A stretch of DNA of 63,170 nt, counting the filler, from Octopus bimaculoides (taxonomy: Eukaryota), in assembly GCF_001194135.2 (NCBI RefSeq). It is 4 parts of 4 records of this genome, joined end to end, with 100 filler letters (N's around TTAATTAATTAA, not from the genome) between each part and the next. Parts side by side here need not be neighbours in the genome. Positions count along the whole stretch, not along the records: positions 58,001 to 61,308 come from NW_026330383.1; 3 more parts are not named here. The stretch is one strand, 5' to 3'. Each line of letters begins with the position of its first letter. Positions within the stretch are counted from its first letter, which is position 1. A program made the position numbers and the translations under genes. The notes under the pieces were generated by a model. It had not been told where the DNA came from and made no database searches. It saw only the letters and a list, made by a program, of their open reading frames with translations. Below, in pieces: positions 58,001 to 62,668 of this stretch.

Positions 58001-59060
58001 TTTACATTGAAATGGTTTCTCTCCAGTCTGTCTTTTCTCATGCATTTTTAAGTTACCAGAATGAGAGAATGACTCCTTACATTTTTCAGAACGAGGTGGT
58101 TTCTTTCCAGTCTGTCTTTTCTCGTGCCCTTTGAAATCACCAGAACGAGAGAATGACTTTGTACNNNNNNNNNNTGAGAGAATGACTTACCACATTCCTG
58201 ACATTGAAACGGTTTCTCTCCAGTGTGTATTCTCTCATGTATTCTTAATTTAGTAGAACGAGAGAATGACATTCCACATTCCTTACACTGATATGGTTTC
58301 TCTCCAGAATGTATTCTTTCATGTCTTGTTAAATCACTAGACTGAGAGAATGACATTCCACATTCCTTACACTGATATGGTTTCTCTCCAGAATGTATTC
58401 TCTCATGTATTCTTAAACCACTAGAACGAGAGAATGACTTACCACATTCCTGACATTGAAACGGTTTCTCTCCAGTGTGTATTCTCTCATGTATTCTTAA
58501 TTTAGTAGAACGAGAGAATGACTTACCACATGGCTTCTCTCCAGAATGTATTCTCTCATGTGTTCTTAAATCACCAGAACGAGAGAATGACTTTGTACAC
58601 ATTTTACATTGAAATAGTTTCTCTCCAGTCTGTCTTTTCTCATGTGTTCTTAAGGTACCAGAATGAGAGAATGACTTCTTACATTTTTCAGAATGAAGTG
58701 GTTTCATTCCAGTGTCTTTTTTCACTTGTTTACTGAAGTCACTAGAGTCAGGTAATTTCTCTCCAAAATCCTTACTCTGGAATGCTTTCTCTCCAGAATG
58801 GATTTTCTTGTGTTTTGTGAATATACAAGAGTCAGAAAATTTCTTTCCACAGTTCTCACGCCGGAATGGTTTCTCTTTGGAATTCACATCAGTGACATTT
58901 GATAAATCATCTTTTCTGCAGTTTGTTCCACTCTTAATTGATTGTGTTTGTATTTTATTATTTTCCGGTGACAAATTCATTCTAGGTTGCTCCAAGTCTT
59001 CAAGCATTTTGGTACTCTCAAGAAATGTATCAATCTGAGAAATTGAGGAATGACAGTTAT
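58001..59060 (-). CDS. PRDM9: PRDM7/9-like gene, C2H2 zinc-finger array exon (incomplete, gap-interrupted)
   Basis: TATTTACAG acceptor at 59061-59062, phase 1 matching the SET exon donor; three degenerate then canonical TGEKP-linked fingers; 10-N gap at 58165-58174; fingers continue in another frame into the gap at 58000. Confidence 0.85.
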
Positions 59061-59633
59061 CTGTAAATATAAAGAAACATGACTGAGAAAAAACTGTTTT
59101 TAAATATCAATAAATACACACTCACACACAGACACACACACTTTGTAGAATATTGGGTGAGAAAACTTCTTGGGTGACAAATTCTTGGTGTTAAGAACAT
59201 AGCTTCTTAATTAGATGGAGAAAATTCTAAGGTTTGCTTTGGTGTAACGGTAGCACATCTGACATCTGTAGTATGGACAACCCTTAAAATTTTTTTCATA
59301 TGAGGGTCTCTTTTGTTTAACTCAATATTTTGCCAAACTGCTAAGTTATGGGGACGTAAACACACCAGCGAAACTCCATCTATAAGTCATTTGTGGATGC
59401 AGACCACCTTCTACTAATATTGTTGTATCTAATTATATAAATAGCTACATCTGTTGCTTCTAAAGGAAGAAAAGGAGAGACTGTTGGCAGCAATAGTAGT
59501 GGTACAGATGTTGGTGATGATGATGATGATGACTGTAAATGATGAGAGAGAGAGAAAGAGAGGTGGAAAGGGAGGGAGGGAGAGTGAGAGAGAGAAAGTG
59601 AGAGAGAGTTAATTATAAATAAGAGATTTTTAC

Positions 59634-59928
59634 CTGCAGAACTGATTGTTTCTGATAACTCTGCCCCAACAGTGGAAACAGTCTTTGTTTTCGGTTGTTT
59701 ACCTCGTAGTATACCAAGATATTTGGCATATTCTTCTCCATACCAGACAAGTAATTCTTCACCAGGAACAATGTTTCTTAATGTTCTATAGTAAATATTA
59801 TCATTGTACTGAAAAGCTGTTAAATTCTGTTCTTCTTCCGTCCTTGCGCAGTTTACGTATCGCAACCAATTAGAGATTTTCACATTCTTTGCTTCAACAG
59901 AATGGCTATGTTTTCCATTCCTTTTAAT
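59634..59928 (-). CDS. PRDM9: PRDM7/9-like gene, PR/SET domain C-terminal exon
   Basis: GATGCAG acceptor and GTAAAA donor; [55 protein letters not shown]. Confidence 0.9.
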
Positions 59929-60261
59929 CTGCATCAGAAATGGAACTAACAATGATTTTCAATAGTCATGTGACATAGAAGAAAGGGCAGTGTTCCTAAC
60001 CATTATTGTCCCTCTCAGACTGATATGGTGGTTAAGTTAGTGTTAATGTTATGCAAAGACTATAATTCTATTTTCTTTCACCAACAAGTTGACAATATTC
60101 TACATTTATTTAGTGATCTTTGCATCTCTTTAGCAATCCCAACTAAGGTGTCACTTCAGGGATGATAAGAGATCCTAATACAACAGATTCATATCCAGAA
60201 TTTTCCAGAAAAATCCAAAAGAAATCTTTTGTTATTGAATAGCATTGCAAATTTTTTTATG

Positions 60262-60562
60262 CATTCTCTATTACTTGTTTCATTCATGTGACTGTGGCCA
60301 TGCTGGAGCACTGCCCAAGCTATTCTCGTTCTAGCAGCTATACTCTCAGAGCATCCACCCCTGCTACTGACTTGCTCACTTAGGTAACAGAAGCCATCAA
60401 CTACTTCTAGTTTTCCCTTCTGGCACGTGATTGAATCTATTTTATGTACATTTTTGGTGTTAATTGTACCTGTACACCTTCCACACACAAAAACAATCTT
60501 CCCTGTTAACCTTCCTCTAATATTGCTGCACCTCTTATGTGTCCCTAGCTTACACTGGCTAC
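60262..60562 (-). mobile_element. RTE-clade RT fragment joined to a SINE-B/CR1-type tail
   Basis: CKLGTHKRCSNIRGRL..FVCGRCTG..KLEVVDGFCYL.EQVSSRGGCSESIAARTRIAW, then GGCAGTGCTCCAGCATGGCCACAG. Confidence 0.8.
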
Positions 60563-60810
60563 ATTATTATTATTAACTTAGCTAACTGCTTATCGTTTTC
60601 ATCACAAAACCATATCTTATAAGCTAATATATGAACTGAAAAGAAATTACATGATACAGTACATCATTCTATAGCAGCAAATGGAAAACGAGTTATAATA
60701 GGTTTAATGTTGATGAAAAATTAATGATTTAAAATTGCTATAGTTAACACATTATGAATATTTTATAAATATTACATGTTGAGTATATTCCATTGTTTTT
60801 AACACATTAC

Positions 60811-61005
60811 CTGCCAACTGTAACCAGATACATAAGTATCATCCAAATCATTAATAATTTTTCCTTCGTAAGGGCCAAACGTGCTTCTAGCATGAATTGT
60901 AACAAGTGCAATAGCTCCAAGACCAGCTCCTGGAATTTTTGATTCTGTGATAGACACACAAGGTGGGGCAGTTAATTTGGCCCGATTGGGAGTTCCTTTA
61001 GCAAC
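60811..61005 (-). CDS. PRDM9: PRDM7/9-like gene, PR/SET domain N-terminal exon
   Basis: TTTACATTTAG acceptor and GTAATG donor; 65 codons, phase 0/0; VAKGTPNRAKLTAPP..SKIPGAGLG..TFGPYEGKI..SGYSWQ aligns by eye with human PRDM9 VDKGHPNRSALSLPP..SGIPQAGLG..HFGPYEG..GYSW. Confidence 0.9.
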
Positions 61006-62668
61006 CTAAATGTAAAGAAAAATAATTGATAATTGCATCAACTCTAATAAATTCTATGTTAGTAATTAACATAGATGGACTATATGTATTATCTCTTATC
61101 AGCCATAACAACATCTAGCATCATATTTCATTTTCTTTGAAGTCTTGCTATAAATGGTTGGAACTTCATATTACCAGACTAATATAAGAAGTATCTATCA
61201 TCGTCATCGTCGTCATTAAACATTCTTTTCCCATGTAGCATGGGTCAGATGAAATTTGTTGAAGCAGATTTTCTTTGGGTAAATTACTTTCTTATCACCA
61301 ACCCTTACNNNNNNNNNNNNNNNNNNNNNNNNNNNNNNNNNNNNNNNNNNNNTTAATTAATTAANNNNNNNNNNNNNNNNNNNNNNNNNNNNNNNNNNNN
61401 NNNNNNNNAAACAAGCTTTTGTCGGTTTTATAGATATTTCAAAATTATGATGCTATGACGCTAGGTGTTTCAATTATCTCATCCAACCCCTGTATATATG
61501 TTTTTGGGAGATTCTTTTCATAATGTGAATGAAGGGAGAAAAGTTATCTCTTATAAGTTGTCTCATTTGTGCCTTACCTGAAAAAGAAAAAAAAANNNNN
61601 NNNNNCCTCGAATTTGTATATACCATTGAAATCATACTTGTAACTTTCCGGTCTTCAGTGAACAGCTATTGTTCTTCATTTCTAAAATATTGCTTGGTAC
61701 CTTGTTCGGAATCTAGAAAACTAATGGCATTTTGTACAAGAAAGAATTCCTGTAGCAAAGATACTGTATATTCCAGATTTTAAATGTCCCATTTGGGATA
61801 AACATGAGGAAAATCGAGATGATAACGCATGAATTTTGTATGTTTGCTTCAGTATTAGCCATCATTAACTTCGAATNNNNNNNNNNNNNNNNNNNNNNNN
61901 NNNNNNNNNNNNNNNNNNNNNNNNNNNNTTTTTTTTGCGTTGCACTGATAACAATAAGCGATGAACCGTGCATATCATGTATAGATATACTTCTTTTGTG
62001 CGTAGCTCTGTGGATCAATACAGGAAGTAACATTCTAACTTCTCACAAAAAATATTATTGATTGGAACCATTTACTAAGGTCTGAATCCGGCAGAATTTT
62101 GGGAATATTTACGCAATGAAGGGAAATTTTATTCTATTGATTGAGTGATATATGTGAAAAGGTAACACATTTCTCTAGTAATTCCGAACCGAAATGTCTA
62201 AAAAGCCAAAATCTGAATAGCGATTAAAGCAGCTGCAGTTGGTATACTTGCAAACAGGTTCGAGGATAGTACAGTTTTTGNNNNNNNNNNGCTGCAGTTG
62301 GTATACTTGCAAACAGGTTCGAGGATAGTACAGTTTTTGCTTTTCTAAAATGTATCGTCTTCCATTTCCTGTACATCTACAACCAAGGACATTGACATTA
62401 ATATCATGCATTGCTATTGGGAGTTCAGCCCAGTTTACTTATCTTATTTTTGATATATTAATATATAAGNNNNNNNNNNNNNNNNNNNNNNNNNNNNNNN
62501 NNNNNNNNNNNNNNNNNNNNNNNNNNNNNNNNNNNNNNNNNNNNNNNNNNNTTATTTTTACTAAACCTAGAAAGATGAAAGGCAACGCCGATCTTGGTAA
62601 CTTTGCCACTAGAAAGGAATGTAAGTAAACACTGTAGCACTTAGTTCGGTTCATCCAGTAATCAAAGG

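Follow-up and report, generated by a model that had tools for sequence, protein, structure and literature searches.

A probable PRDM9 orthologue in Octopus bimaculoides: the PR/SET domain and partly degenerate zinc finger array of a fragmentary cephalopod gene

Does a cephalopod possess PRDM9, and could the protein position hotspots of meiotic recombination? The question is raised by a locus of Octopus bimaculoides, known as the California two-spot octopus, at 58001-61308 of the window, by which we mean the whole stretch of DNA that was analysed (63,170 nucleotides (nt), filler included). The part described here, 58001-61005, was read by six-frame translation and inspection of the exon junctions, and carries on its minus strand a gene for a PR/SET domain followed by an array of C2H2 zinc fingers. 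To our knowledge, PRDM9-directed recombination has been demonstrated in vertebrates only; its possible ancestral origin in animals is now being pursued in cnidarians, and a cephalopod orthologue with an apparently intact SET domain would add a data point from Spiralia. The locus 58001-61308 is identical to L001 9698-13005 and belongs to an unplaced scaffold of 15,405 bp (LGKD02035502.1, assembly GCA_001194135.2). It is bordered upstream by a run of 2,067 N and downstream by the scaffold end, and N makes up about 40% of the scaffold and 49% of the 10 kb upstream of the piece.

The piece is very probably the 3' part (the back two-thirds) of the O. bimaculoides PRDM9 (Prdm7/9) orthologue, comprising the PR/SET exons and a last exon that encodes a linker and the C2H2 array. 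The preliminary description of this DNA had proposed a PRDM9-like gene in an invertebrate, and by sequence comparison the assignment of the SET domain to the Prdm7/9 family is secure, the source being a cephalopod. In a phmmer search of all PDB chains, PRDM9 gave the best matches (human 130-131 bits, mouse 125 bits, E about 1e-37), ahead of PRDM11 (84 bits), PRDM12 (83 bits) and then the other PRDMs. PRDM11 and PRDM12 have the PR/SET fold in common with the octopus protein, but their SET domains are only 36-37% identical to it, against 50-55% for PRDM9s, and PRDM11, unlike the octopus gene, lacks fingers. An exhaustive HMMER search returned LOTGIDRAFT_156439 of Lottia gigantea as the most similar single-domain protein (58%), followed by chiton, bivalves, amphioxus and many vertebrate PRDM9s; the named homologues of the octopus SET domain were PRDM9/7-like throughout. 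The phylogeny that had been recommended as a check agrees. A neighbour-joining tree places the octopus SET domain inside Prdm7/9 and not in another PRDM clade, among spiralian sequences (Haliotis, Lingula, Gigantopelta), its exact position being weakly supported (bootstrap <50%). Prdm7/9 was already present in the ancestor of bilaterians, and PRDM11 is confined to vertebrates (PMC4760075).

The octopus PR/SET domain looks catalytically intact as far as its residues can tell. Residues were numbered by taking PDB 4ijd (221 residues) as human 195-415 and counting along the alignment. The 4ijd alignment bears out the tyrosine equivalences that had been proposed: Y46 in FGPY (exon A, codon 60870-60868, minus strand) corresponds to human Y276, at 4ijd chain position 82, whilst exon B supplies Y112 in IYY (codon 59790-59788, minus strand) and Y128 in VWY (codon 59742-59740, minus strand), which correspond to human Y341 and Y357 at chain positions 147 and 163. 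In an alignment of 26 PRDM9-type SET domains, the octopus sequence keeps 38/40 of the columns with a conservation of 85% or more, and its two deviations, V to A and D to E, are both conservative; accepted vertebrate PRDM9s show 0-4 such deviations.

The structure of the gene is held in common with other spiralian PRDM9-like genes. As had been described, there are three in-phase exons, with consensus splice sites. Exon A (60811-61005, minus strand; acceptor tttag/GTT, donor CAG/GTAATG) is translated as the first half of the PR/SET domain, from VAKGTPNRAKLTAPP to SGYSWQ. It is separated by a phase 0 intron of 882 nt (59929-60810) from exon B (59634-59928, minus strand; acceptor gatgcag/ATT, donor GCAG/GTAAAA), which encodes the second half (IKRNGK to SSA) and carries one extra base at its end, giving phase 1. 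The second intron, of 573 nt (59061-59633, phase 1), leads into exon C (acceptor tttacag/AT), which runs on the minus strand from 59060 to at least 58175 and opens with a 61-residue linker (DNCHSSISQIDTFLEST to DVNSK, 58876-59060) without a C2H2 pattern, ahead of the finger array. Both intron lengths are multiples of three, so that the three exons lie in one genomic frame. The spliced product of 458 codons has zero stops and zero frameshifts, and in Pfam it matches PRDM2_PR (6.5e-42, residues 18-138), SET and C2H2 finger families.

When the PRDM9-like proteins of Lingula (L002) and the abalone Haliotis (L003) were mapped onto their own loci, the octopus junctions matched theirs in position and phase in 3/3 cases. 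The first SET exon opens with a GTT (Val) codon in octopus and Lingula alike, the phase 0 intron follows ...YSWQ, and the phase 1 intron, with its carried-over G, follows the second SET exon. The last exon of Haliotis, which opens with the same GAT codon as octopus exon C, encodes a post-SET finger, a linker and the array. The shared junctions are evidence of orthology independent of the SET domain, and they speak against the idea that a SET domain was fused by chance to a gene from the C2H2 expansion of cephalopods.

The same three exons have been joined independently in an NCBI model. Our 458-residue product is identical over all 458 residues to XP_014789468.1, 'zinc finger protein 391, partial' [Octopus bimaculoides], which ends at 58175. 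The name masks the PRDM9-type PR/SET domain encoded within 58175-61005, and surveys that select PRDM9 by name would miss this protein; recognition of the orthologue corrects the database name. Similarity searches can miss it too. A word-indexed protein search with the SET exons failed to return the identical octopus protein, which was recovered with the finger exon as query, so that the lack of cephalopod matches in word-indexed or profile searches (none among the best 120 of 510 profile-search matches) is not evidence of absence. A further search, of proteins represented at 50% identity, omits the octopus protein itself, and other cephalopod orthologues could not surface there.

The array in exon C is built on an 84-nt unit and lies entirely on the minus strand. 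It begins with three degenerate units of 84 nt each: d1 (58875-58792), in which the zinc ligands have been lost, leaving R-x2-C; d2 (58791-58708), which has none; and d3 (58707-58624), which has S-x2-C with H-x3-Q. The core array (58219-58623) follows, with canonical fingers F1 (58623-58540), F3 (58470-58387), F4 (58386-58303) and F5 (58302-58219), and with F2 (58539-58471) shortened from 84 to 69 nt by an in-frame 15-nt deletion that removes F/Y-Q-C-x-E. Finger F6 (58175-58218, EKPFQCQECGKSFS) is partial, being cut at unit position 44 by an assembly gap.

This array shows recent internal duplications together with variation at the contact residues. Pairwise nucleotide identity amongst F1-F5 is 80-96%, and 80-88% between distinct fingers. 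Half-finger types are combined as in a mosaic: F5 combines the first half of F4 with the second half of F2 and F6 starts as F3 does, and this mosaic produces two exact repeats: 95 nt at 58176-58270 and 58428-58522 (offset 252 nt), and 58 nt at 58260-58317 and 58344-58401 (offset 84 nt). The preliminary description had reported two long stretches of identity between fingers; the long repeats exist, but the ranges given for them each run one base past the repeat and match at 92/93 and 55/56 positions. Tandem Repeats Finder assigns the array a period of 84, 4.2 copies and 87% matches, compared with 82% for Lingula and 68% for Haliotis. The helix strings that had been read (RSGDLRT, RSTKLRI, RSSGLRI, QSSDLTR) are correct. 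The accompanying claim that the fingers differ mainly in the helix holds as regards an enrichment at the contact codons, where variable nucleotides occupy 8/12 positions of codons -1, 2, 3 and 6 and 18/72 elsewhere (Fisher p=0.007, over only 5-6 fingers), but it overstated the homogeneity of the array, given the identities amongst distinct fingers and several non-contact substitutions; amino acid changes fall in seven non-contact codons as well. Mammalian PRDM9 arrays are longer and >95% identical outside the contact codons.

The array runs into an assembly gap of 10 N (58165-58174), beyond which a contig of 164 nt (58001-58164, minus strand) extends to the scaffold end. If the nominal 10 N are taken at face value, the fingers lie in frame 0 on the near side of the gap and in frame 2 beyond it, where finger-like units are read (..TKSFSRSGDFKGHEKRQTG / KKPPRSEKCKESFSHSGNLKMHEKRQTG / EKPFQCK..). 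Since the 84-nt unit is left at position 44 on the near side and resumed at position 26 on the far side, a continuous array needs 65+84k missing nt, and this length class (2 mod 3) also brings both sides into one frame. The 10 N are thus a placeholder and, given a continuous array, at least part of one junction between fingers lies within the gap. The 164 nt are open to the edge and are 85% identical to 58603-58746, the degenerate start of the array, and not to the core. A simple continuation of the array was accordingly rejected as unproven; the 164 nt may be such a continuation, or a short contig that derives from an allele or from a paralogue.

What could such a protein do? By homology, a role as hotspot determinant is plausible in the octopus. 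On the model of vertebrate PRDM9, the fingers would recognise a motif in the DNA, after which the SET domain would trimethylate lysines 4 and 36 of histone H3 (H3K4 and H3K36) in neighbouring nucleosomes. The vertebrate hotspot role also requires the N-terminal KRAB-like and SSXRD domains. The 'candidate hotspot determinant' of the preliminary description says more than the piece supports, since it calls for KRAB and SSXRD together with array polymorphism and germline expression.

A number of features of the octopus locus weigh against the orthologue reading itself and against extending the homology this far. Only four canonical C2H2 fingers precede the gap, the deletion in F2 costs that finger its first cysteine, and five units are degenerate: d1-d3 and two beyond the gap. 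The homogeneity of the array was benchmarked on the Lingula and Haliotis arrays only. An excess of variation at contact residues would be expected of C2H2 arrays in general. Repeat-collapse errors are likely in an unplaced scaffold of which about 40% is N, and the 15-nt deletion itself may be either a real allele or an artefact of assembling the repeat.

The remaining features of this kind concern the domains that flank the SET domain. A canonical post-SET C2H2 finger (C-x2-C...H-x3-5-H) lies 25-51 residues past WYG in 11/11 relatives (five molluscs, Lingula and five vertebrates), but none was found in the octopus, whether in the product of splicing or in intron 2, all frames of which were scanned and gave no hidden zinc finger exon. 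The start of exon C (DNCHSSISQIDTFLEST), which lies at the homologous codon, looks like a relic of this finger that has lost its ligands. In mammals the post-SET finger is thought to regulate the SET domain. On the N-terminal side, KRAB, SSXRD and zinc knuckle were not found in the piece or in the half-N 10 kb upstream, and the 303 nt upstream of exon A within the piece hold no recognisable coding sequence; we thus agree with the preliminary description that neither these domains nor a post-SET finger are recognisable in the piece. The search used tblastn with the N-termini of ten invertebrate and several vertebrate PRDM9s, and a hidden Markov model of molluscan N-termini against six-frame pieces. 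It gave chance-level matches only, one of them being MKRNFLFNINIGIP at L001 573-617, in AT-rich sequence adjoining a copy of a short interspersed nuclear element (SINE). Since N fills about half of those 10 kb and the knuckle exon of Lingula lies 6.7 kb upstream of its first SET exon, failure to find the octopus N-terminal domains is uninformative; the octopus knuckle exon may lie inside or beyond the gaps. The hotspot reading nevertheless loses strength through the lack of a post-SET finger, through a visible array that is small and partly broken, and through an N-terminus that cannot be read. With so fragmentary an assembly, this piece of the gene cannot decide on a hotspot role.

Because the array is partly degenerate and the post-SET finger ligands are lost, the octopus protein may be a derived or weakened version of PRDM9. 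Taken further, the locus could be a truncated or decaying PRDM9 paralogue, or an incipient pseudogene, that has kept the SET domain and lost specific DNA binding, as in the truncated copies of teleosts and cnidarians. We regard this as a real possibility, if less than a probable one. It would account for the ligands lost from d1-d3 and from two units beyond the gap, for the 15-nt deletion and for the missing post-SET finger, and it sits well with an unplaced and gap-ridden scaffold. Truncated paralogues are frequent in the PRDM9 family (see also PMC5519329), and the family as a whole undergoes frequent birth-and-death evolution (bioRxiv 10.64898/2026.09.07.749791). The known truncated paralogues (teleost copies without KRAB and SSXRD; cnidarian copies) resemble the octopus gene in showing SET and fingers without N-terminal domains, but their truncation is known from complete gene models, whereas that of the octopus gene is only an assembly limit. 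Decay also sits poorly with 458 codons free of stops and frameshifts and with a SET domain as conserved as those of accepted PRDM9s, and the deletion possibly arose in the assembly of a repeat with an 84-nt period. Degenerate edge units are, moreover, not unusual for PRDM9; the first array finger of hippopotamus PRDM9 reads YKGDCGQGF and is likewise without its first cysteine.

The opposite explanation is a full-length, active PRDM9 that positions octopus hotspots, in which the fingers choose the sites, the SET domain deposits H3K4me3 and H3K36me3, the KRAB and SSXRD domains recruit the break machinery, and the array turns over under Red-Queen dynamics. We hold this to be rather doubtful, even with an intact SET domain bearing the three tyrosines, with recent duplications within the array and with variation at the contact codons. 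Vertebrate PRDM9 (human and mouse; PDB 4ijd, 6nm4, 4c1q) resembles the octopus protein in a SET domain about 50% identical with the three tyrosines conserved, in a minisatellite-like array with variation at -1, 2, 3 and 6, and in a degenerate first array finger; unlike the octopus protein, it has a post-SET finger and a demonstrated hotspot function. The explanation also draws on the molluscs, since the architecture of KRAB-like, SSXRD-like, knuckle, SET and fingers is kept in other mollusc classes. Against it stand the N-terminal domains not found in half-N upstream sequence, the lost ligands of the post-SET finger and the short, partly broken visible array, and we know of no invertebrate PRDM9 for which the direction of hotspots has been demonstrated by functional work. 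Invertebrate Prdm9 has been reported to show positive selection and concerted evolution (PMC2779102), and the same hallmarks occur in cnidarians (bioRxiv 10.64898/2026.09.07.749791). The more specific proposal, that the octopus keeps a catalytically competent, full-length PRDM9 whose fast-turning array positions meiotic hotspots without a canonical post-SET finger, is a reading that we consider unlikely; were it true, a cephalopod would be the first protostome with PRDM9-directed recombination.

A third explanation, raised in the preliminary description, is a gene of the cephalopod C2H2 expansion that carries, or has been mis-joined to, a PR/SET domain, its array reflecting ordinary recent duplication of fingers; this is very improbable, for although C2H2 expansions are large in coleoid cephalopods (PMC12513265, PMC9068888), the NCBI model bears a zinc finger protein name and array homogeneity was judged against Lingula and Haliotis only, the nearest SET relatives are molluscan PRDM9s, the intron before the finger exon agrees in position, phase and first codon with that of Haliotis, whose last exon holds post-SET finger and array, and the splice sites are consensus, with the independent NCBI model joining the same exons. 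A gene of the expansion should have arisen by recent tandem gene duplication and have no orthologues outside cephalopods, and here both the SET domain and the exon structure, with its three intron positions and phases, are orthologous to those of gastropod (abalone) and brachiopod (Lingula) PRDM9-like genes.

The orthologue reading thus places the octopus gene beside the PRDM9s of other molluscs. Those of Lottia gigantea, the chiton Liolophura sinensis and the bivalves Potamilus, Solemya and Mulinia have SET domains 52-58% identical to that of the octopus, with the same catalytic tyrosines, and like it they have a last exon with a tandem C2H2 array showing homogenisation from repeat to repeat; introns were matched against Haliotis and Lingula. 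They differ in that KRAB-like, SSXRD-like and knuckle regions can be seen at the N-terminal side and a canonical post-SET finger follows the SET domain; in the octopus the first three fall outside the sequence that can be read, and the post-SET finger is absent or degenerate. The full architecture (KRAB-like, SSXRD-like, knuckle, SET, post-SET finger, array) is present in the retrieved Lottia, chiton and unionid proteins. In Liolophura sinensis the array has at least eight fingers with a near-invariant framework (EKPFKCTWCDYRC..QS.LTQHVRTHT), which differ essentially only in the helix. At protein level this chiton array is far more uniform than the octopus one. It shows concerted evolution much more cleanly, and it makes the better candidate for dynamics of the PRDM9 type in an invertebrate.

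A gene of this kind is no novelty, mollusc PRDM9 with concertedly evolving fingers having been known since 2009, when Oliver et al. described Prdm9 with such fingers in Lottia, Capitella and Nematostella, together with expressed sequence tags from gonad (PMC2779102). Bivalve PRDM9s have been annotated and their expression profiled (PMC10451705), and a 2026 preprint applies domain, tyrosine and finger-evolution criteria to 28 cnidarians (bioRxiv 10.64898/2026.09.07.749791). A literature search returned no paper linking PRDM9 to octopus or cephalopods in substance. The features that separate a hotspot-designating PRDM9 from truncated copies cannot be shown by this fragment, which makes it useful mainly as a lead to a locus that merits re-assembly and population sequencing, and not as a discovery in itself.

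Some relatives encountered in the searches are unusual in their own right. Two to four PRDM9-type SET domains occur per annotated model in Priapulus (4), Physella (3) and also Bradybaena, Gigantopelta, Vanessa and Clarias, which points to tandem duplications of SET domains or genes, or to fused annotations of tandem paralogues; the butterfly Vanessa tameamea is thus among the species with multi-SET PRDM9-like proteins. In the nemertean Lineus longissimus, a 'lipoxygenase homology domain-containing protein 1-like' combines a PRDM9-type SET domain with a PLAT domain, and may be a gene fusion or a mis-annotation.

Exact look-ups of the window's open reading frames in other assemblies gave no match, nor did an Rfam scan of the piece. 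Upstream lie at least four copies, 75-92% identical, of an interspersed SINE-like repeat some 250 nt long (L001 1-250, 1182-1432, 6542-6742 and 7137-7289), and fragments of 42-52 nt at about 90% identity lie one in each intron (60264-60315 in intron 1, 59328-59369 in intron 2). This repeat resembles the abundant octopus SINE. A 99-residue open reading frame in intron 1 (60189-60488, minus strand; ..KGKLEVVDGFCYLSEQVSSRGGCSESIAARTRIAW..) has no Pfam match; we take it to resemble the C-terminal tail of the reverse transcriptase of a non-long-terminal-repeat retrotransposon (LINE, long interspersed nuclear element). Intron 2 also contains microsatellites: at 59507-59608 these are (GAGA)n, (GAT)n and a 14-mer variant, and at 59116-59141 there is (AC)n.

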